This document shows positions 1 to 60,989 of a DNA stretch of 64,000 nucleotides, piece by piece (position 1 is the stretch's first letter; each line of letters begins with the position of its first letter). The notes under the pieces are model-generated. The model made no database searches and was not told where the DNA came from. It was given only the letters and a program-made list of their open reading frames with translations. Made by a program: the position numbers and the translations under genes. Source of the DNA: Styela clava (taxonomy: Eukaryota); assembly GCF_964204865.1 (NCBI RefSeq), contig NC_135260.1, forward strand, positions 5,704,001 to 5,768,000, written 5' to 3'.

Positions 1-112
1 ACAATTGAAAAAGTATTATAAAATATATTTGATTTATAAATGTGTTTTAAAATTCGTAGTATTTTAAAAAAAAAAGGGTATATTGCAAATGAATAACTCA
101 ATTCCTTTTTAG

Positions 113-2305
113 CATTTGGTATTGGTCTGAATGAAGCAGCACAATGCACTGACTGTCCAACTACAAAACTTGGAACAGAGAGCAAGAGTATCACATATGG
201 ACCAATTTATAAATACAACTGCTGGTGTGATTGGACAATACCAACAAGTATTGAGACAGATCATGAAACAGCAGTTGTTCTGTTGTTGCAGAATGTTTCA
301 CTGCCATTGACAACTGGTAGTGGACATACAGACTGCTCTGGAGAAATCAGATTCCCAAGTTAGATATATTTTAAAACTACTCAACTATTACTACACTACT
401 ACGTTATATACAATTCTAATATACAGAAACAATTAACAAAAAAAAACATTAATACCGGTAAATACAAAATTGTATCAATGCTTTTACAGGCACTGATGGA
501 TACAAATGTGAATTTGCAATCAACTACTGTCTTGTATTTGCAACTGCAGTAACCATTTGCAATATCAACAAAATCAGAGAGAAAATTCCAGTTGCAAATC
601 ACACCTGTGATTCAATTATTCCATGGAATAAAGCTGGAGGAAGTCCATATGAGATACAATACTATGCAGCAAACCGTGCTGATTACTCAAAATACTTCAC
701 AATACAATATCTTGTAATAGATTGCACACCAACAACATCTGCACTGAGTGAGTAATTTTTTTTTTATGCAATGCCTAATCATGTCTTATGCTCAAGTAAT
801 CACAGATATAGCAATCTATAAAGAACCATATTTATCACACCCGGGTGAGGTGGTGGGATGGGGGAACCTGAGATGTGTAACGTACAACAGGAGTGGGCAA
901 GGTTTTTGGACTAGGGGCCAGAAAGTTTGCCCACCTAGAATGACGGACCATGTAAGTATAACGTGAAAAGTTACATTTTATGAACGATACTTAGTGTTAC
1001 AAAAGCAAAAGTGGAAAACAATAAGCCTCGTGCCAAAACTAAATTAATCGTTTTAGTTTGGTTATGGCAGCATCAGGTGGGACAAATTAAACTACCAAAT
1101 AAGCCGGATTTAGTCCGCGGGCTGTAGTTTGCCCATGTCGGTCTTACAATGTCAACACAGTTTAAGTGTAACACCTTAACCACTAGGGTCAGGCGACCAT
1201 GCCCATATTGCTCTTGTTGAACAATATAACTCAATTTCAGGATGTGAGAATCAAACTTTTATTACAAAATTTTAGCCACGATAACTGAGCAAGCAACAAC
1301 AACTCATCCAAAAAATACATCATCTGATAAAATATACTTTGATTCAACCACTAAATCAACCAGAACATCTGGCAAAACTCAAAGTCCTATTAAAGACTGT
1401 GAATGCGACAGCACTGAAACATCACTGATCATTGCTATTCCAGTATCAGGAATTGCGGGTTTGACCATTGGAGTTTTGTTGACACTCATAATACCAAAGT
1501 AAGCATAGATGTTATAAATTATATGAATAACATTCATGCGCACAGTTACTCAAGTATGCTTGAATACAAGATATTAACAAAGTATTCAACCCAGTACTGT
1601 TAAGTCAGTTATATTCTTCATCTTCTGATTGTAAGACGATCAAAATTCTAACCCAGTCCAGTCTCAAGCTGCTAACCATGAGTTGACAAGATTTTGACCT
1701 CAACTCTCAACTCCACAAATAATAAAAATACCCACTGATTCTATCGCCTGATGTCTATTTTCTATTGAATCAAGTTGATTCGAAGTTTCAATCTAATTCA
1801 AAGTTTAAAGAAAAAACATAGTACTGAATCCAGATACTGCTGGATGACAATACTTTAACTATGGACACTGTGGAATTTGCAAACACTCTTAGTTTCATTT
1901 AAAAACGCTTATAACGATAGAATCTTGCAAACTCATTTCTTTAATAAAAACGACCATGTTTTCGATAACAGCCTCAAATACTGAATTCAAGTTTTTGTGT
2001 TGGGTCCCAGCGACGTAATGAAGCGGATGTCAAATTAAAAACGATCAAAAATCTTTCATTAACTTATATTTCTATCAAACACCAGATATTGCAACAACAA
2101 CGAAAAGAAACCAAAATACAAAGATTCAATGGAAATGGGAAGCATTCAACATCAGCAGCCAACTGTCCATGAACGAACAACATATGAAAACTACACACCA
2201 ACATCAGATGAAAGTGGATATGAAGTTCCGAATCAAGTTGATAACAAGAATGAACAACAATACGAGGTTATAATACCTGGAAAGGAATATCAATATGACA
2301 ACTGA
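113..2305 (+). CDS. Copy 1 (5'-partial): CUB-like type I membrane receptor with tyrosine-motif tail
   Basis: Exons 113-358, 490-747, 1276-1498, 2086-2305, all AG/GT-bounded and open in frame; exon 1 lies upstream of the window. Ectodomain CTDC...GPIYKYNCWCDWTIP...AVVLLLQNVSLP...DCSGEIRFP...YFTIQYLVIDC; TM LIIAIPVSGIAGLTIGVLLTLII; tail TYENY...SGYEVP...QYEVI...YQYDN*. Confidence 0.88.
770..1204 (-). mobile_element. tRNA-derived SINE remnant in intron 3, interrupted by the hAT MITE (also in copies 2, 6, 7, 10)
   Basis: The minus strand reads an A-box-like TG(A/G)CCCTAGTGGTTAAGG, then after the MITE a degenerate B-box CAGGTTCCCC and a CTTGAGCATAAGACA body motif. Confidence 0.5.
888..1141. mobile_element. 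hAT-type MITE in intron 3 (same insertion at 6808-7122, 34558-34873, 39746-40057, 59488-59795)
   Basis: Imperfect TIRs CAGGAGTGGGCAA...TTGCCCATGTC(G/A)G; TSD (A/T)CCTACAA, clearest in copy 2; GGCCCGCGGGC subterminal motif. Absent from the homologous site of copy 9 (~54335). Confidence 0.75.
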
Positions 2306-4701
2306 AAGCTTCGACATATCTTTTTCACAGTCACGAAACTATGCCACAGAACTTTTGTAACATAAATTTTGGCAAAAACATGAACTTAACATTCGATCAG
2401 CTCTACTGAACAATTTAGAAGTTGTTTGCATCTTTAATATATTCTCACATTCTCTCTCTTTAATATATTCTTTTCTCATGTAGTTTCTTATCTGGGGAAA
2501 TTCTAGCCTAAGCAGCCACTCAGCATATTCTACTAATACAGATAATCCTTGAGTGAGTGTGCATGAGTAGATAATCAGGGGACTAATCAAGATATTTGCA
2601 TGATAGCGTCTACATCAGTGGTTTCCAAACTTATACGTACTGTTGCCCTCTTACAGCACTCTGTATATCATTATCACCCCCGGCAAATAAAGAAGAAAAA
2701 TTGAAAACACATGCATTAAGAAACCAATTAAAAAAAAAACAGAATAATAGAACATGATGTTTGTGAGAGAGACATGCTTACGATATTCAGCTAATTTATT
2801 CAATGTTCATAGATATTTTGTTCAGGTATAATCTTAGATCGCCCATTTGTTTGTGTTGGAACTAAAAACCTTTATGGTTCTACTTCTTCATTAATCAACA
2901 GGTATTTGAGATAACTTGCAACAAAATATATCAAATTCCTTTTTGCAAAAATGTATTTTGGTTTGCGATAATTTTGACTATTTAAAAAGAAGCATTACAC
3001 CCGAAGTCTCCCTCCAATGTGACTCCTTCACCCCCAAGAGGGTGCTACTGGTTTCTTATTATAACAAAATCAAGTTTACACAACTGGTGACTGACAAATG
3101 TTAGTATTTTTACATGCTTCTTAATCGCAATGAATTTGAAATGCTTCTATAAAAGGTATTCTTGCCTGTTTTCTGATTTCTGTTTCACTTCTCTTTTGAT
3201 TTTTCAACTTCCACTTCTGAGAATTATGTTGTTTCAAAGATTCTGTGAAATGAATGAAATATATTATACAAATGTCAAATAAATATTTACAGTTTCTATT
3301 CACAAAAGTCTTCTTCTGGTTTATAAATTAGATTTATTCACTTTGCACTCCAATCAAGGCTTCAGATAAACAGTCAGTAAAAATACAACCTAAATACACA
3401 ACTATATACACACAATCGACATCATCATTAAAATATTTTGTAAAACCAACTCATGTTACAAACTTCATCTCTCCAGCCTAAGCTGTAAAAAAACAGCCAA
3501 TGAGACATAATGAGACTGCTGAAATCAAAAACAGCATAATCCTTGCAGTTCAGCAAACTCTAAGCAATACATAACCATTTGGGATAAGTTTCGGAATGAA
3601 TTGTTTAGTGGAACAAATGAGAGCAAAATGAAAACCGAAATCTATGAGAACAAAACTAATCTAACAGGTATTAAAGTGTCCAACATATATTGAATATTGT
3701 ATTAAAAATTGTATTCTCCTATTCTCAAATAATTCAATATAGATTGTGAAGCAAGGCAATGTTCCCTGAAGTCTGAATTATATTAGAAGAAAGATTAAGC
3801 AACATTTATGAATCTGAATCTAATATATGTTCAATGTAGTGAAAAAAACCTGACTGAAGTATATAAAAATATGAATGAGGGGAACCACTTCCCACTTCTC
3901 TCAATAAAAAGGAAAATAAATGTGACTCGTGATTGAGTTAATCTACCATTTATGGTGACTGTGGATATAGCCCCACATCAAAAAATTATACCCATTAATA
4001 AAAATTTACTTAATAAATATTTATAGACAGAAGATGGCTGGATATCTGAAGATGACATACTTCCTGATTGTCGGTTGACATTCTGACAATTTCTTCACCT
4101 ATGAGTGATAATTCAACTTTCTATAAACCAGAATGAACGATGCTAATGGTATGTAATACAATAAATATCTATAATCAGCAGTATTTGATGAAACAATCAT
4201 CAGTGAGCATTGCTAATAATTTTAGCAGAGGGAAACTAGTTTGAATTAATTTTATAGGATTTATAAGTTTAGACATTATTAGTGGACTGAAATGAAAGAA
4301 CAACAATTTACAAGAATATTTCTGTAACGTTTCATCTGACCAAAGACAGACTTCCTCAGACAAGGAGTTTACAACAATCAGGACTCTTGAATTGCATAGT
4401 ATAGTCATGTTCATCCCTTCTACAGCATCCTTCCAATATACGCATACGGATCCACAAGCATAGAGGGCATAGAAGAAGGATGGGAGTTAGTCTCGCGTAA
4501 CCAAGCACACAATTTACAAGATGTCGCAATAATACAGAAATTTTCAAGTTTCGTTCGACTAAAAATCTTTCATAAAACGGTTTCCAGCAATATGGCTGAA
4601 GCTTTACAGTAGGTTTGACATCTCAAATGTTTTCTTTCAAAATGGCCTACGAAAGTATTTTCTCATTTCAGAAAAGGACCCAGTCCTATAGTTGAGTAAT
4701 C

Positions 4702-26688: not shown

Positions 26689-28160
26689 CTATTATGATCA
26701 ATGTGAATGAAGCATATCAATGCCCTAGTTGTCCCAAAATAACACTTGGAACAGAGAACAAGAATATCACATATGGACCAAGTAATGAGCGGGACTGCCA
26801 ATGTGATTGGACAATACCAACAAGTATGGCCACAGATCATGAAACTGCAGTTGTTCTGTTGTTACAAAATGTTTCATTGCCAATGACGGCTGGTAGTGGA
26901 AGTAGAGACTGCTCAGGAGAAATCAGATTTCCAGGTGAGTATTCAATACTCTTACAAAAGTAAAACTAGTTGTTAATGAAAATGAACTTTGTGCAGGTGC
27001 TAGTGGACACAGATGTGATTTTGCAAACTACCAGTGTATTGTTTATACAACTGAATCAACCATTTGCAACATCAACATAATCAGAGAGAAAATTCCAGTT
27101 GCAAATCACACCTGTAATTCAATCATTCCATGGAATAATGCTGGAGGAAGTCCATATAAGATACAATACTATTCCAGAGGCTATGTTGGTTACACAAAAT
27201 ACTTCACAATACAATATCTTGTGGTAGATTGCAGATCTCCAACAACCACTTTTAAACCATGTAAGTCATAAACAGCAAAAACATTCAGTTTAACAGTGAA
27301 ATATCCAACACTAAAAATGAATCTTTTTTTTTCAAAATACAGCAACAGGAAATGGATGGGAAACAACAACAAAGAATCCAATAGAAATTTCGACAACAGA
27401 AAAAACTGAACGGACTACAAAAAACAAAAGTAATAAAAGTTTATTTGTCGAAACAATAGCAATCATCCAATACACAATCATAGTCAAAATTATTATAAAT
27501 TTTAGTTACCGAAGCTGAGCAGCGAACAACACAATCTGATTCCGGCATAACTAATTCTCATTCCATATGTGATTTGGACAAAAACATCACCATCACCACG
27601 GGAATCAATGGAAGTTCTGATTCACTGATGATCGCAATTCCAGTTTCAGGAATAGTTGGTTTTATCTTTGGAGCTTTGTCAATGTCTTTCATACAAAGGT
27701 AAGAAGTAAAATAACAGTAGCAATATTTTCCCCTCGTTACTTTCAATTTGTATATTGCTTTTGAATATTGTTTTGAGAAATAGGCATAAGTCATTCCGGG
27801 TTTTGTTCGAATATGATTAAACAATATGCTATTAAATATTTTTAACCCAGGTATTGCAACAAGAACAAGAAGAAATTGAAGAACAAAGATTCAATGGAAA
27901 TGGGAAGCATTCAACATCCAGAGCCAACTGTCCATAAACGAACAACATATGAAAACTACACACCAACATCAGATGAAAGTGGATATGAAGTTCCGAATCA
28001 AGTTGATAACAAGAATGAACAAAGTGGATATGAAGTTCCGAATCAAGTTGATAATAAGAATGAACAAAGTGGATATGAAGTTCCGATTCAAGTTGATAAC
28101 AAAAATGAACAACAATACGAAGTTATGACAACTGGAAAAGAATATGAATATGAGAATTAA
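26689..28160 (+). CDS. Copy 5: CUB-like receptor with three tail repeats; family-type exon 1 not found
   Basis: Exons 26689-26934, 26997-27260, 27343-27429, 27506-27698, 27851-28160, all open in frame. Tail has 3x SGYEVP(N/I)QVDNKNEQ. No MWKHSK exon between 22636 and 26688. Confidence 0.8.
27978..28112 (+). repeat. Coding 45-bp tandem repeat (3 units) in the cytoplasmic exon of copy 5; also 3 units in copies 6 and 8, and 2 units in copies 7, 9, 10
   Basis: AGTGGATATGAAGTTCCGAATCAAGTTGATAACAAGAATGAACAA = SGYEVPNQVDNKNEQ. Confidence 0.9.
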
Positions 28161-33056: not shown

Positions 33057-36002
33057 ATGTGGAAACATTCAAAACTCTTGAATTGCAAATGGTTGTTTAT
33101 CCAGATGATTGGTGAGATCGTACTTACGGTACATATACAAACCATTCAAAGATGGGAAGAGATAACAATATTTAAACATGTGTTATTTGAAGCATTTTCA
33201 AATCAATTACAATTTCATTGATTTTAAGTTGTACTATTGATTACTGTTAAAGTGATCAAATTCGTTAATATGAGTCCTTAATATAGCTAAATAAAAATTT
33301 GCCCAATAAATTCTCATCAGTTTCACGTCCAGTTTGAACGAAAAATTTTCAAAATGATACAATTTTGCGCAACGTGTGTAAGCCTGTCACCAATGCTAAG
33401 ATGATCAATTGGAACATCTTCTAGTGAGAACATAAATTTTGTGCAAAACGGCCTAGTTTTCGGAAACTTTTGTGTACAATTGTGCATAAACACAAGTTCA
33501 AGTGTTAAAAAATCAAATATTGATTCCATTCTCATAGGAGTAATTAAGAAATACATATAATATTTTTTGAGTAACCTTGCATAAATTATTTTTATAGCTC
33601 TTAACATCAGCATGAGTGAAGCCGCACAATGCACAGATTGTAAAAACCTAATACTTGGAACAGGGAGCAAGAATATCACATATGGACCAAGTAATGAAGA
33701 CAACTGCAACTGTTATTGGACAATACCAACAAGTATGGACACAGATCATGAAACTGCAGTTGTTCTGCTGTTACAAAATGTTTCACTGCCAATGACAACT
33801 GGTAGTGGAAGTACAGACTGCTCTGGAGAAATCAGATTCCCAAGTAAGTGCAATACTTGAATACGATCACAATTATTGGTCTACAAGCAAGACCGCAGGC
33901 CGTGGCAAGCATTTTCAAAAATCATAAATATCCATGTAAAGCCGACAAAAAACAATCGGCAGTTTTAACAAAAGTATGCATGTAAATTTATACACAAAAA
34001 CAGCTGGTACTCTTCCGGTAATCCAGAATTTTTGTATAAGGGGTTGAACCTGAAAACCCCTCTCTGAATGCGCCAATGTCTACAAATATTAGTTTTCCTG
34101 GTTCGACTGTAATTTATTCAAGAATACTAATGTGCTCTTTACAGGCACTTATGGATACAAATGTGAATTTTCAAGCAATTACTGCCTTGCATTCGCAACT
34201 GAATCAACCATTTGCAACATCAACCAAATCAGAGAGAAAATTTCAGTTGTAACTCACATCTGTGATTCAATCATTCCGTGGAATAAAGCTGGAGGAAGCC
34301 CATACAGGCCCATCTGTAATACAATACTATGCAAAAAACCCTGCTGGTTACACAAAATACTTCGCAATACAATATCTTGTGATAGATTGCAGACCAACAA
34401 CCACACCTGCACTCAGTGAGTAATTTCATTTTTTATGTAATGCTTAATCATGTCTTATGCTCAACGAGTCACAGATATACCAATCTATAAAGAACCATAT
34501 TTATCACACCTGGGTGAGGTGGTGGGATGGGGTGAAGCTGAGATGTGAAACGTACAACAGGAGTGGGCAAGGTTTTGGACTAGAGGCTAGAAAGTTTGCC
34601 CACCTAGAATGACGGGCCATGTAAGTATAACGTAAAAAGTTAATATTTTATGAACGATACTTAGTGTTACAAAAGCAAAAGTGGAAAACAATAAGCCTCG
34701 TGCCAAAACTAAATTCCATCGCAATCTCAACAAATTCTTTGAACTATTTTTTAGCTAAAATATCAAAAATTTAAAAATTCAGTTTCAGTTTGGTTATGGC
34801 AGCATCAGGTGGAACAAATTAAATTAACAAATGAGCCGAATTTGGCCCGCGGGCTGTAGTTTGCCCATGTCAGTCCTACAATGTCAACACAGTTTAAGTG
34901 TAACACCTTAACCACTAGGGCCAGGCGACCATGTCCATATTGCTCTTGTTGAACGATATATCTCAATTTCAGGATGTGAAAATCAAACTTTTATTACAAA
35001 ATTTTAGCAACGGTAACTGAGCAAGCAACAACAACAGCAACTCATCAAAAAGATAAATCATCTAATAAAATATACTTTGACTCAACCACTGAATCAACCA
35101 GAACATCTGGCAACGTTCAATGTTCAACTGAAAACACAGAATGCAGCAGTTCCCAAACATCACTGATCATTGCTATCCCAGTATCAGGATTCATGGGTTT
35201 GATCATTGGAGCTTTGTTAATGTTCATAATACCAAGGTAAGCATAGATATTGTATAATAAATGAATGTCAATGAAAATGCATAAATTACCAAATGGGCAA
35301 TCTATCAAGTACAAAAAAAATGTGTGCCACTCTCCACCTGAGAGTGATACCTGCTTCAAGGATGACAAAATTCAAATACAAGTTTGAAAAAATAAAAACC
35401 AATCTCAGCCAATTTTGTGTAACAAATTATTTTGTTAAAAATGTTGCCATTTGCAAAATCCAAGTTTCATGGCAAACTTTTGGATACATTTATTGACTCT
35501 GATGACAAAAAAATTTATATTAACTACAGTTTCGGATCCAATTCCAACTAAATATGCCAAACTTGACTGTTTATCGTAGATTCAGTGAAGTCAGAAGCAG
35601 ATATTAAAACAGCAAATGATTACCGGTAGTCTCAATTACAGTCAATACATATAGTAATCATTAACTTTGATTATATTTCTATCAAACACCAGGTATTGCA
35701 ATAACAACAAGAAGAAACCAAAGAACAAAGATTCAATGGAAATAGGAAGCATTCAACATCAGCAGCCAACTGTCCATGAGCAAACAACATATGAAAACTA
35801 CATACCAACATCGGATGAAAGTGGATATGAATATCTGAATCAAGTCGATAAAAAGAATAAACAAAGTGGATATGAATATTTCAATCAAGTCGATGAAAAG
35901 AATGAACAAAGTGGATATGAAGTTCCGAAACCAGTTGATAACAAGAATGAACAACAATATGAGATTATAACAACTGGAAAGGAATATCAATATGACAATT
36001 GA
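33057..36002 (+). pseudogene. Copy 6: frameshifted CUB-like receptor (10-bp insertion in exon 3)
   Basis: Exons 33057-33111, 33598-33843, 34145-34415, 35008-35236, 35693-36002 (1111 nt, not a multiple of 3). Extra CCCATCTGTA at 34309-34318 relative to the paralogs; the shifted frame stops at TGA 35018-35020, before the TM. Confidence 0.82.
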
Positions 36003-58228: not shown

Positions 58229-60989
58229 ATGTGGAAACATTCAAAACTCTTCAGTTGCAAATGGTTGTTTGTGCAGATAATTGTTGAGATCTTACTTACA
58301 TTAAGTTTAGTTACACATTCTGCTGTTACACAACCAACTCTGATGGGTATTATTAGTTGGTATTCGAAAGTTTTAAATTATTTACAATTACAGTAATTTG
58401 AAATTGTCTCATCAAATCATAATAAGTAACTTCTTTAAAATCAAATCGCGGACAATAAATTGAGGTTATTTAACTTTTGTTTTCAAAACATATTTCACAT
58501 CCAGATTCAATATTAAAATATTATACAATTTTAACTACCTCGTCTTTCAAATACACGAATGTTTAAAAAAGGAATAACTAGGTTTTATACAATTATTCAT
58601 GGATTCAAGAATCTGTAATACAATTGAAAAAGGATTATAAAATATATTTGATTTATAAATGTGTTTTAAAATTCGTAGTACTTCCAATTAAAAAAAATAA
58701 GTTATATAGCAAATGAATAACTTGATCCCTTTTCAGCATTTAGTATTGATCTGAATGAAGCAGCACCCTGCACTGATTGCTCTAATATCATACTTGGAAC
58801 AGAGAGCAAGAATATCACATATGTCCCAAGTAATGAATACAACTGCAACTGTGATTAGACAACACCAACAAGTATGGAGACAGATCATGAAACTGCAGTT
58901 GTTCTGTTGTTACAAAATTATTCATTGCCAAAGACAACTGGTACTGGAATTACACGCTGCTCTGGAGAAATCAGATTTCCAAGTGAGCTATATTATCATA
59001 CCACTCAACTATTACTATACTATTGTAATACACAGCAACAATTGTTAAAAACATTAGTGAATACAAAATTGTATCAATACATTTACAGGTACTGATTCTC
59101 ATAAATGTGAATTTGCAATCAACTACTGTCTTGTATTTGCAACTGCAGTAACCATTTTCAATATCAACAAAATCAGAGAGAAAATTCCAGTTGCAAATCA
59201 CACCTGTGATTCAATTATTCCATGGAATAAAGCTGGAGGAAGTCCATATGAGATACAATACTATGCAGCAAACCGTGCTGATTACTCAAAATACTTCACA
59301 GTACAATATCTTGTAATAGATTGCACACCAACAACATCTGCACTGAGTGAGTAATTTTTTTTTTATGCAATGCCTAATCATGTCTTATGCTCAAGTAATC
59401 ACAGATATACCAATCTATAAAGAACCATATTTATCACACCCGGGTGAGGTGGTGGGATGGGGGGAACCTGAGATGTGTTACCTACAACAGGAGTGGGCAA
59501 GGTTTTTAGACTAGGGGCCAGAAAGTTTGCCCACCTAGAATGACGGACCATGTAATTATAACGTGAAAAGTTACATTTTATGAACGATACTTAGTGTTAC
59601 AAAAGCAAAAGTGGAAAACAATAAGTCTCGTGCTAAAACTAAATTAATCGCAATCTCAACAAATTCCTTGAACTATTTTTAGCTAAAATATAAAAATTTA
59701 GTTTTAGTTTAGTTTAGTTGGCAGCATCAGGTGGGCCAAATTGAACTACCAAACGATCCGGATTTGGCCCGCAGGCTGTAGTTTGCCCATGACAGTCCTA
59801 CAATGTCAACACAGTTTATGTGTAACACCTTAACCACTAAGGCCAGGCGACCATGCCCCTATTGCTCTTGTTAAAACCCTATAACTCAACTTTGGGATGT
59901 GAGAATCAAACTTTTATCACAAAATTTTAGCAACGGTAAGTGAGAAAGCAACAACTCATCAAAAAGATACATCATCTTATGAAACATTCCCAACCACTGA
60001 ATCAACCAGAACCACTGACAACATTCAATGTTCCATTGAAGACTGTGAATGCACCAGCACCCAAGTATCACAGAATACAGAAGAATCAGAGAATACAGTA
60101 CCAAACTATTCTCAAACATCACTGATTATTGCTATTCCAGTGTCAGGAATTATGGGTTTGATCATTGGAGCTTTGTTGATGTTTATAATACCAAGGTAAG
60201 CATAGATGTTATAAATTATATGAATACCATTTATGTTACTCAAGTATGTTTGAATACAAGATATCAACAAAGGATTCAACCCAGTACTGTTAAGTCAGTT
60301 ATATTTCTATCTTCTGATTGTAAGACAATCAAAATTCTAACCCAGTCCAGTCTCAAGCTGTTAACCATGAGTTGACAAGATTTTGACCTCAACTCTCAAC
60401 TCCACAAATATTAAAAATGACCACTGATTCTATCGCCTGATGTCCATTTTCTATTGAATCAAGTTTTACCAATCTAATTCAAAGTTTAAAAAAAAAAACT
60501 TGGTACTGTATCCAGATACTGTTCGATGACAATATTTTAACTATGAACACTGTGCTTTGCAAACTCATAATTTTAATAATAACTAAGTCCGACCATGTTT
60601 TCGATAGCAACCTCAAATACTAAATTCAAGTTTTTGTGTGGGGCGAAGTGATGTAATCAAGTGGATGTCAAAATTAGAAATGTTCAAAAATCTTTCATTA
60701 ACTTATATTTCTATCAAACACCAGATATTGCAAATACAACAAGAAGAAACCAAAGAACAAAGATTCAATGGAAATGGGAAGCATTCAACATCAGCAGCCA
60801 ACTGTCCATGAACGAACAACATATGAAAACTACACACCAACATCAGATGAAAGTGGATATGAATATTTCAATCAAGTCGATAAAAAGAATGAACAAATTG
60901 GATATGAAGTTCCGAATCCAGTTGATAACAAGAATGAACAACAATATGAGATTATAACAACTGGAAAGGAATATCAATATGACAATTGA
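58229..60989 (+). pseudogene. Copy 10: pseudogene of the CUB-like receptor family
   Basis: Exon remnants 58229-58283 (donor GTGAG changed to TTGAG), 58737-58982 (conserved Trp TGG changed to TAG at 58856-58858), 59089-59346 (conserved Cys changed to Phe), 59931-60195 (disrupted by indels), 60725-60989. Confidence 0.87.

Follow-up and report, generated by a model that had tools for sequence, protein, structure and literature searches.

A tandem gene family of putative receptors in the tunicate Styela clava with a predicted CUB-like head and about a dozen fast-evolving sites

Locus and gene family

The subject of this analysis is a family of putative receptor genes in a 64,000-nucleotide stretch of the Styela clava genome (assembly GCF_964204865.1, contig NC_135260.1, forward-strand positions 5,704,001 to 5,768,000), hereafter the window, and in particular the extracellular domain encoded at window positions 113-747. 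The window is AT-rich (GC 0.30-0.37), has eukaryotic introns and contains no N letters. A first-pass annotation had described 113-747 as an invariant framework carrying five hypervariable patches, and this interval proved to be exact: it comprises exon 2 (113-358) and exon 3 (490-747) of one gene (copy 1), joined in phase 1, whose combined translation is identical to residues 19-187 of P0013, the 333-residue RefSeq model 'uncharacterized protein LOC144429527 [Styela clava]'. Residue numbering follows P0013 throughout, and all features of copy 1 lie on the + strand.

Exon 2 (113..358) is flanked by an AG acceptor at 111-112 and a GT donor at 359-360, and its frame-3 translation (P0013 19-101) contains the end of the signal peptide, a C-x-x-C motif and the first half of the predicted CUB-like domain. 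Exon 3 (490..747; AG acceptor 488-489, GT donor 748-749; P0013 101-187) carries the second half of the domain up to C179, followed by the start of a Thr-rich stalk. The two downstream exons were assigned by matching them to P0013 by eye: exon 4 (1276..1498) encodes a Thr/Ser-rich stalk and a transmembrane helix (residues 246-263 in the structural model), and exon 5 (2086..2305) a cytoplasmic tail with tyrosine motifs, ending in a stop codon at 2303-2305. Exon 1 of copy 1 lies upstream of the window. Judged from its sequence, the encoded protein is a type I membrane protein with a signal peptide, a CUB-like head, a Thr/Ser-rich stalk, a transmembrane helix and a tyrosine-motif tail.

In a tblastn search with the two exon peptides, the + strand of the window gave 10 copies of exon 2 and 9 of exon 3, and the other strand none. 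Across the 377 Mb (380 contigs) of the full assembly there were 41 exon-3 matches, corresponding to 40 copies, of which 34 lie on one strand within 260 kb (C14:5.53-5.79 Mb); the others are found at 6.16-6.19 Mb (three), at 19.05 Mb (two, divergent) and on C13 (one). Stops, frameshifts or truncation have broken 6 of the 40 exon pairs genome-wide, two of them in the window: in copy 9 (58739-58984) exon 2 is interrupted by an in-frame stop (CD*TTPT), and in copy 6 (34144-34417) exon 3 is broken by a frameshift, the tblastn match there being split over two frames. The locus is thus a tandem cluster with interspersed pseudogenes, as is typical of immune-type receptor clusters.

The family alignment contains two classes of cytoplasmic tail, GYEVP../QYEVI.. 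and IYG..LYAVV..SIYAVV; the SIYAVV of the latter may be an immunoreceptor tyrosine-based inhibitory motif (ITIM), going by the consensus [SIVL]xYxx[IVL]. Similar ectodomains on alternative tyrosine-motif tails are a trait of paired-receptor clusters. The copy on C13 (L013:1126-1797, C13:18.93 Mb) has an 84-nt intron 2 that is open in frame; the RefSeq model P0002 codes through this intron and the newer P0001 splices it out. This copy lacks the first cysteine, with LRSDC replacing C-x-x-C.

Database searches were run exon by exon, plus one natural open frame through the short intron of L013, and then with the database proteins returned. A word-index search of 5.8 billion proteins gave 34 matches, all of them S. 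clava proteins named 'uncharacterized'. A HMMER profile of the family run against 1.84 billion representative proteins gave 42 matches at E<=0.001; among ten of these that were looked up, nine came from S. clava and one from an unnamed contig. The weak tail of the representatives list was rejected as spurious, P0050 being a bacterial Listeria-Bacteroides repeat protein and others matching via transmembrane or low-complexity parts. As far as these collections show, the family appears confined to S. clava or its close kin. No paper on this receptor family was found in the literature, and the available passages of the S. clava genome paper, supplementary tables aside, are silent on it.

Predicted fold of the ectodomain

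The structure was predicted with AlphaFold2 from a 25-protein alignment. Residues 30-180 reached a predicted local distance difference test (pLDDT) score of ~70-92 and form a beta-sandwich with one helix (126-132) and predicted strands at 43-47, 54-60, 71-81, a hairpin 84-87/90-93, 96-98, 113-118, 143-145, 155-159 and 169-178. On this model, exons 2 and 3 encode one extracellular domain of ~150 residues and ten cysteines, a CUB-like beta-sandwich. When the model was compared with 48,161 chains using VIA-align, the top 19 rows were all CUB-containing (Z 6.9-8.4 over 97-128 residues, root mean square deviation 2.7-4.5); a Z near 8 is borderline by the tool's own statement, and it is the consistency of CUB among the top rows despite this that is notable. 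The CUB alignment covers ~100-110 of the ~150 domain residues, CUB chains having ~112. The best Foldseek rows were also CUB (probability 0.96-0.97), headed by the second CUB domain of MASP-1 (MASP-1 CUB2, E 5.5e-3, probability 0.96), with zero matches in the PDB at E<=0.001. Those protein language-model neighbours that bear a name were mostly CUB clusters (0.85-0.89).

Sequence comparison gives no support for membership of the CUB family. Pfam searches of the exon peptides (E<=10) and of four full proteins left the ectodomain blank, with no immunoglobulin (Ig) or lectin match either; among 137 CUB (PF00431) matches in the genome at E<=1e-5, none lies in C14:5.53-5.79 Mb; and hhalign of the family against 12 canonical S. 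clava CUB domains gave a probability of 0.2% (E 0.3), pairing only 18 columns, Y47-S64, with the 'YP..Y...C.W.I' signature of the latter. A sequence search of the PDB with the family profile returned transmembrane-helix matches only. Because the fold resembles CUB and sequence-level support is absent, the domain is here termed CUB-like and is kept apart from the CUB family proper. Canonical CUB domains, each in a single exon, do form tandem arrays elsewhere in the genome, at C3:15.71-15.81 Mb and C19:9.35-9.39 Mb (L044-L072), without sequence-level relation to this receptor family.

The ten cysteines are conserved, the first being shifted or lost in 3 of the 31 intact copies (see below). C57 is aligned to the cysteine of the CUB C-x-W motif in the weak hhalign match, and C33 probably bonds to C55 or C57, next to the highly variable site 56. 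Three N-x-S/T sequons (P0013 44-46, 79-81 and 137-139; window 187-195, 292-300 and 597-605) are kept in most copies (N44 in 26/31, N79 in 29/31 and N137 in 30/31), and a fourth, N125-I-[N/S]127, toggles among copies. The framework is probably glycosylated, to go by these motifs.

Variable and conserved positions

For the comparison of copies, 40 exon-2/exon-3 pairs were extracted; six broken and three very divergent pairs were set aside and the 31 intact pairs were aligned. Mean per-site entropy over residues 30-179 was 0.75 bits, and the 16 most variable sites (1.7-2.7 bits) were 34, 35, 36, 56, 84, 87, 91, 96, 103, 104, 105, 110, 111, 148, 161 and 163. This profile replicates between the 8 window copies and the 23 outside copies (Spearman 0.67). 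Clustering of variability along the sequence is modest, with a lag-1 entropy autocorrelation of 0.23 (p=0.003) and a mean nearest-neighbour distance among the top 16 sites of 3.75 against 5.23 expected (p=0.076).

The framework described by the first-pass annotation was borne out: every patch string it quoted was found in the window copies, as were its three near-invariant blocks, whose mean entropies (0.39-0.49 bits) lie below the domain mean. These are residues 59-83 (WTIPTS..LLLQNVSLP, window 232..306; 0.49), which contain the long core strand 71-81 of the model; residues 122-147 (TICNINKIREKIPVANHTCDSIIPWN, window 552..629; 0.39), which contain the helix 126-132 and form a helix-bearing extra stretch relative to a CUB domain of ~110 residues; and residues 169-179 (YFTIQYLVIDC, window 693..725; 0.40), which contain the last strand (169-178).

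The five patches themselves fared less uniformly. Patch 1 (residues 34-37, PTTK; window 157..168) directly follows C30-x-x-C33 and has entropies of 1.7-2.4 bits. Patch 3 (84-91, LTTGSGHT; 307..330) forms a predicted hairpin (84-87/90-93) after strand 71-81, reaches 2.3 bits and carries the in-frame indels between copies that had been reported for it. In patch 4 (103-112, DGYKCEFAIN; 495..524) sites 103, 104, 105, 110 and 111 are hot (2.1-2.4 bits) and C107, F109 and N112 are invariant. Patch 5 (161-165, ANRAD; 669..683), in the loop between the last two strands, includes the domain maximum at site 163 (2.71 bits). Patches 1, 3, 4 and 5 therefore do hold highly variable sites, whereas patch 2 (50-53, IYKY; 205..216), in the loop between strands 43-47 and 54-60, has entropies of 0.75-1.57 bits; the IYKY of copy 1 is an outlier there and SNEY is dominant. 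Nor are the patches solid stretches, each being made up of two or three hot residues amid conserved ones such as C107, F109, N112, T85 and G165.

The patch list was also incomplete, as four variable sites outside the patches had been overlooked. Site 56 (W; 223..225; 1.97 bits) lies between C55 and C57, site 96 (E; 343..345; 1.97 bits) three residues past C93, site 148 (K; 630..632; 2.31 bits) directly after the second conserved block, and site 157 (Q; 657..659; 1.61 bits) in strand 155-159, between the conserved I156 and Y158.

Exchange between paralogues

Gene conversion among the paralogues is pervasive. Separate trees for the two exons fitted better than a single tree by 192 log-likelihood (lnL) units, and the pairwise homoplasy index (PHI) test detected recombination inside exon 2 (p=0.002) as well as exon 3 (p=0.001). 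Copies 1 and 9, 58 kb apart, have an identity of 0.80-0.85 over exon 2 and intron 2, of 0.94-1.00 from ~500 to 1045, and of 0.81-0.89 thereafter; this is a recent conversion tract of ~550 bp (window 500-1045 against ~59100-59650) that takes in exon 3 together with the initial 300 bp of intron 3. Copy 9 being a pseudogene by its exon 2 stop, broken copies also join the exchange.

Ectodomain segments also seem, from sequence, to have been exchanged between the two tail classes. Exon 3 of P0019 (C14:5560861), which has the IYG../SIYAVV tail, groups with the exon 3 of genes with the GYEVP tail (P0023; C14:5694546 and window 26996-27250); P0019 and P0023 share the patch 5 string 'SRGYVG', and exon 2 of P0019 resembles that of the IYAVV-type P0021.

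Tests of selection

The ratio of nonsynonymous to synonymous substitution rates (dN/dS, omega) over the whole domain was 0.58 by NG86 counting and 0.57 by parsimony. For the 118 framework codons it was 0.44 (NG86), 0.44 (parsimony) and 0.43 by maximum likelihood (ML; twice the log-likelihood difference, 2dlnL, 93 against omega=1), the ML estimates being fitted with an own rate scale for each codon set. The 31 patch codons pooled gave 0.94, 0.89 and 0.88 respectively (p=0.35 against 1 for ML), and the patches in the 23 outside copies 0.86 (bootstrap 0.53-1.31). By NG86, the single patches range from 0.58 (patch 2) through 0.69 (patch 4), 0.95 (patch 3) and 1.21 (patch 1) to 2.31 (patch 5). The proposed diversifying selection on these patches is thus not seen when they are taken whole, with a pooled ratio of 0.88-0.94, and finds support at the level of single sites. 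Read literally, the refuting condition named by the first-pass annotation, a dN/dS of 1 or less in the patches, applies to the claim about whole patches, which therefore fails.

Site-model likelihoods were calculated under GY94/F3x4 on nucleotide topologies, with fixed iqtree codon branch lengths and separate exon trees. For the 31 copies on two exon trees, M0 omega was 0.55, and 2dlnL was 49.4 for M1a-M2a, 70.3 for M7-M8 and 34.1 for M8a-M8. The positive class of M2a had an omega of 2.5 at 8.5% of sites. Posterior probabilities exceeded 0.9 under M2a at sites 56, 103, 104, 110, 148 and 163, and exceeded 0.95 under M8 at 12 sites (34, 36, 56, 84, 91, 103, 104, 110, 111, 148, 157 and 163), of which nine belong to patches 1, 3, 4 or 5 and none to patch 2. 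By parsimony, these 12 sites together underwent 200.3 nonsynonymous and 25.7 synonymous changes. Sites 34 and 36 in patch 1 had an M8 posterior of 0.99, sites 84 and 91 in patch 3 of 0.98-0.99, and site 157 of 0.96; in patch 4, M2a gave 0.95-1.00 at 103, 104 and 110. Site 56 reached 1.00 in both M2a and M8 (22.3 nonsynonymous against 3.7 synonymous changes), site 163 had a posterior of 1.00 (21.5 against 0.5), and site 148 had 0.94 under M2a (18 against 0). Site 96 is variable, but an omega above 1 is unsupported there (M2a 0.01, M8 0.51).

Recombination mosaics inflate such tests, and segment trees, null simulations and cross-validation were therefore used as controls. With the alignment partitioned into five segments, each with its own tree (models M0, M1a, M2a and M8a), M1a-M2a 2dlnL was 18.7, with an omega of 2.0 at 10% of sites. 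For a parametric null, M1a data were simulated on the five segment trees and analysed like the real data; 17 replicates gave 2dlnL values of 0-17.4, none reaching 49.4. The observed signal thus lies beyond all 17 nulls, although the test is itself inflated.

In cross-validation with NG86, the 12 sites with the highest variability among the window copies had an omega of 1.57 (0.97-3.00) in the outside copies, and sites chosen in the outside copies an omega of 2.18 (1.45-5.37) in the window copies. ML estimates with a free rate scale were 1.56 (p=0.08) and 2.34 (p=0.044). These values are suggestive, not decisive, of an omega above 1 at the hot sites. Positive selection at ligand-contact residues is a trait of receptor clusters; the signal here, at residues whose contact role is putative, is strongly positive in the site models and marginal in cross-validation. 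We read these results as showing about a dozen sites whose rate matches or exceeds neutrality.

Position of the variable sites on the fold

In canonical CUB domains, according to the available parts of PMC8051872, L3, L5, L7 and L9, the loops with odd numbers, face in one direction, diverge most and jointly make up the ligand site of C1s, MASP-1, PCPE-1 and cubilin. The same source places the Ca2+ site on L5 and L9, with acidic residues on both loops in Ca2+-binding CUBs, and describes two conserved disulfides, the second joining L5 to L7. By strand order in the model, we infer that patch 2 corresponds to L3, patch 3 to L5 and patch 5 to L9; the weak hhalign pairing backs the placement of patch 2 in L3 and gives no such backing for L5 and L9. 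Patch 4 lies between strands 96-98 and 113-118. In the simplest one-to-one mapping it would occupy L6, an even loop at the other end of the domain, near the stalk, and site 148 would be in L8. Two strand-to-CUB mappings of residues 99-145 were compared, with either C107 or C114 as Cys4; the spacing of the cysteines favoured neither and left patch 4 unplaced. Patches 1 and 4 and site 148 may sit at this other end. The single ligand-binding face proposed by the first-pass annotation is compatible with this modelling, which equally allows two clusters at opposite ends.

Evidence from sequencing runs

One index search returned 15 runs, none recorded as RNA, and the contigs of four runs were compared over window 100-2320. 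Two DNA-like runs covered all 30 bins; in copy 1 they matched exons 2 and 3 at every letter and showed four alternative letters in exon 4. In a third run (X5) the exon bins were covered and depth was zero in the intron bins 400-474, 775-849 and 1525-2049. One X5 contig joins the end of an exon 3 to 1276, a spliced exon 3-exon 4 junction, with 14 differing letters, and because of these it must come from a paralogue or an allele. The exon 2-exon 3 junction was not among the contigs of the four runs. Together these data hint that the family is transcribed and correctly spliced.

Word depth in intron 3 of copy 1 rises to ~1.5 million in one run and ~24,000 in another over a GC-richer stretch at ~850-1150, and contigs often end or branch at 993 and 1045. 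The stretch is a very high-copy interspersed repeat.

Interpretation

We consider it fairly probable that the locus encodes a family of receptors with a CUB-like head, in which a conserved framework carries fast sites under diversifying selection and segments are exchanged between paralogues. The comparison of copies shows that the framework, comprising the core strands, the ten cysteines, the three N-x-S/T sequons and the helix-bearing insert, is held by purifying selection (omega ~0.43), that about a dozen positions, in the segments 34-36, 84-91, 103-111 and 161-163 and at the single sites 56, 148 and 157, change at least as fast as synonymous sites, and that conversion moves segments between paralogues. 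The fast positions would be exposed contact residues under diversifying selection; conversion would reassort them, so that the array may provide, in the germline, a set of receptors of differing specificity, signalling via their tyrosine tails. Candidate ligands are a microbe, a conspecific cell or a gamete.

Several results weigh against this interpretation, and many of them also favour its main rival, in which the variable positions are unconstrained surface-loop residues (omega ~1) in a young, fast-duplicating family and the omega>1 signal is an artefact of conversion, local synonymous rate and indel-prone alignment. At patch level, dN/dS does not differ from 1. When hot sites are picked in one set of copies and tested in another, with a synonymous rate of their own, the excess is marginal (p=0.08 and 0.044), and one NG86 bootstrap interval reaches down to 0.97. 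Recombination, detected by PHI inside both exons, inflates the site-model test, as 4 of the 17 null simulations exceeded 5.99 (nominally 5%), and the real mosaic may be finer than five segments can capture. In the 31 copies the patches exceed the framework 1.7-fold in synonymous divergence (dS 0.405 against 0.238), with fitted rate scales of 1.8 and 0.78, and the site models assume a uniform synonymous rate; possible causes are deeper coalescence in places where selection acts against conversion, a local bias in mutation, or an artefact of counting. Patch 3 also contains indels, and the codon likelihoods came from neither PAML nor HyPhy and used fixed branch lengths. Beyond the selection tests, the contigs of the two DNA-like runs give no sign of extreme allelic polymorphism in exons 2-3 of copy 1, rare variants or alleles below 95% identity being such as would escape, and X5 is an RNA run by the tool's guess only, made up of short unitigs of which many are probably paralogous. 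On the other side, the 17 null simulations peaked at little more than a third of the observed 2dlnL of 49.4, the signal persists with five segment trees, all four cross-validated point estimates exceed 1.5 with a local synonymous rate, and hot sites such as 148 and 163 show near-zero synonymous change. Neutral loops thus stay a possible explanation, and a less probable one; diversifying selection is the more likely of the two, and is not proven.

Two further explanations can be given little weight. That the variation reflects a decaying array, through pseudogenisation or assembly collapse of a repeat, would fit the 6 broken pairs among 40, copies 9 and 6 in the window included, but it is very improbable given that 31 of the 40 pairs are intact, with the ten cysteines kept bar the first in three copies, that framework omega is far below 1, that RefSeq models exist for the genes, that one run covers exons and not introns, and that the window is free of N letters. 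A true analogy to complementarity-determining regions (CDRs), with the patches diversified somatically by gene conversion or mutation, in the manner of antibodies or variable lymphocyte receptors (VLRs), deserves hardly any credence: germline conversion tracts do exist, one of them involving a pseudogene copy, and the likeness is otherwise one of analogy only, whereas all the variation seen is germline, between paralogues, and the contigs of four runs are without alternative letters in exons 2-3.

The diversifying-selection reading can be carried further, to a proposal that we regard as unlikely in its entirety: that S. clava has built a germline recognition repertoire of ~40 receptors on a CUB-like and not an Ig or lectin scaffold, in which about a dozen residues in the canonical CUB ligand loops would set specificity, conversion would reassort them with pseudogenes taking part, and two kinds of tyrosine tail would read out binding. 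If true, this would be an independent invention of a KIR- or Fester-like system for self/non-self or pathogen recognition, and would make the array a candidate for the receptors behind histocompatibility or gamete self-sterility in solitary styelids.

Among living animals, tunicates are the nearest kin of the vertebrates; S. clava is an invasive fouling species. A large, lineage-restricted receptor array supplies concrete candidate genes for immunity, allorecognition or gamete recognition in Styela, and the hot sites named here are direct targets for binding assays and mutagenesis. Should diversifying selection hold, the family would show a CUB-like sandwich at work as a module for variable recognition; should the variation be neutral, the locus would still be a clear example of conversion-driven mosaic evolution misleading standard site tests. 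In the passages available of PMC12582321, tunicate recognition receptors are described as appearing suddenly, without homologues elsewhere.

Comparison with known systems

The predicted sandwich aligns with CUB domains (C1s, MASP, cubilin, neuropilin, spermadhesins; PF00431) at Z 7-8.4 over ~100-110 residues and shares a C-x-W-x-I strand (C57-D-W59-T-I61) after a Y-x-P loop, the sole stretch that hhalign pairs with canonical Styela CUBs. The S. clava domain differs in having no Pfam CUB match and an hhalign probability of 0.2%, in being ~40 residues longer, with a conserved helix-bearing insert, and in its ten cysteines, where a canonical CUB has four. By strand order, patches 2, 3 and 5 would fall in L3, L5 and L9, at what the available parts of PMC8051872 describe as the divergent ligand end.

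The array shares with the paired receptor clusters of vertebrate natural killer (NK) and myeloid cells (KIR, LILR and Ly49) a tandem, pseudogene-interspersed and conversion-prone organisation with two tail classes. Those systems are tandem arrays of type I or II receptors with interspersed pseudogenes, in which similar ectodomains are combined with alternative signalling tails, gene conversion occurs and dN/dS is elevated at ligand-contact residues. Their ectodomains are Ig or C-type lectin domains, unlike the CUB-like head found here, and their ligands (major histocompatibility complex class I) and expressing cells are known.

Botryllus and Styela both belong to the tunicate family Styelidae, and in a colonial member of it a comparable cluster has been described. 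The Fester/FcoR allorecognition receptor system of Botryllus schlosseri, as reported in the available parts of PMC12582321, has more than 35 clustered genes, ITIM or hemITAM (hemi-immunoreceptor tyrosine-based activation motif) tyrosine motifs in the tails, diversification by intergenic recombination and no homologues beyond a narrow clade, all of which resemble the present family. Unlike the CUB-like head of S. clava, the receptors there belong to the immunoglobulin superfamily (PMC12582321), and Botryllus, again in the available text, is colonial, with a proven fusion/rejection assay and extreme allelic polymorphism. In S. clava, the contigs of the two DNA-like runs showed no variants in exons 2-3.

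With the CDRs of antibodies and T-cell receptors (TCRs) the family has in common short variable segments in the loops of a conserved beta-sandwich. It differs in that its variation is germline, between paralogues, and not somatic, in that the variable stretches are of 2-3 residues, and in that some hot sites (56 and 157) lie in strands.

Systems of this type are already known, in which receptor genes in tandem share a conserved scaffold with fast contact-type residues, undergo conversion, include pseudogenes and carry more than one kind of tyrosine tail. The novelty lies in the scaffold, which is CUB-like, unrecognisable by sequence, and has ten cysteines and a conserved insert, and in the host, a solitary styelid for which no receptor of such a type had been described.

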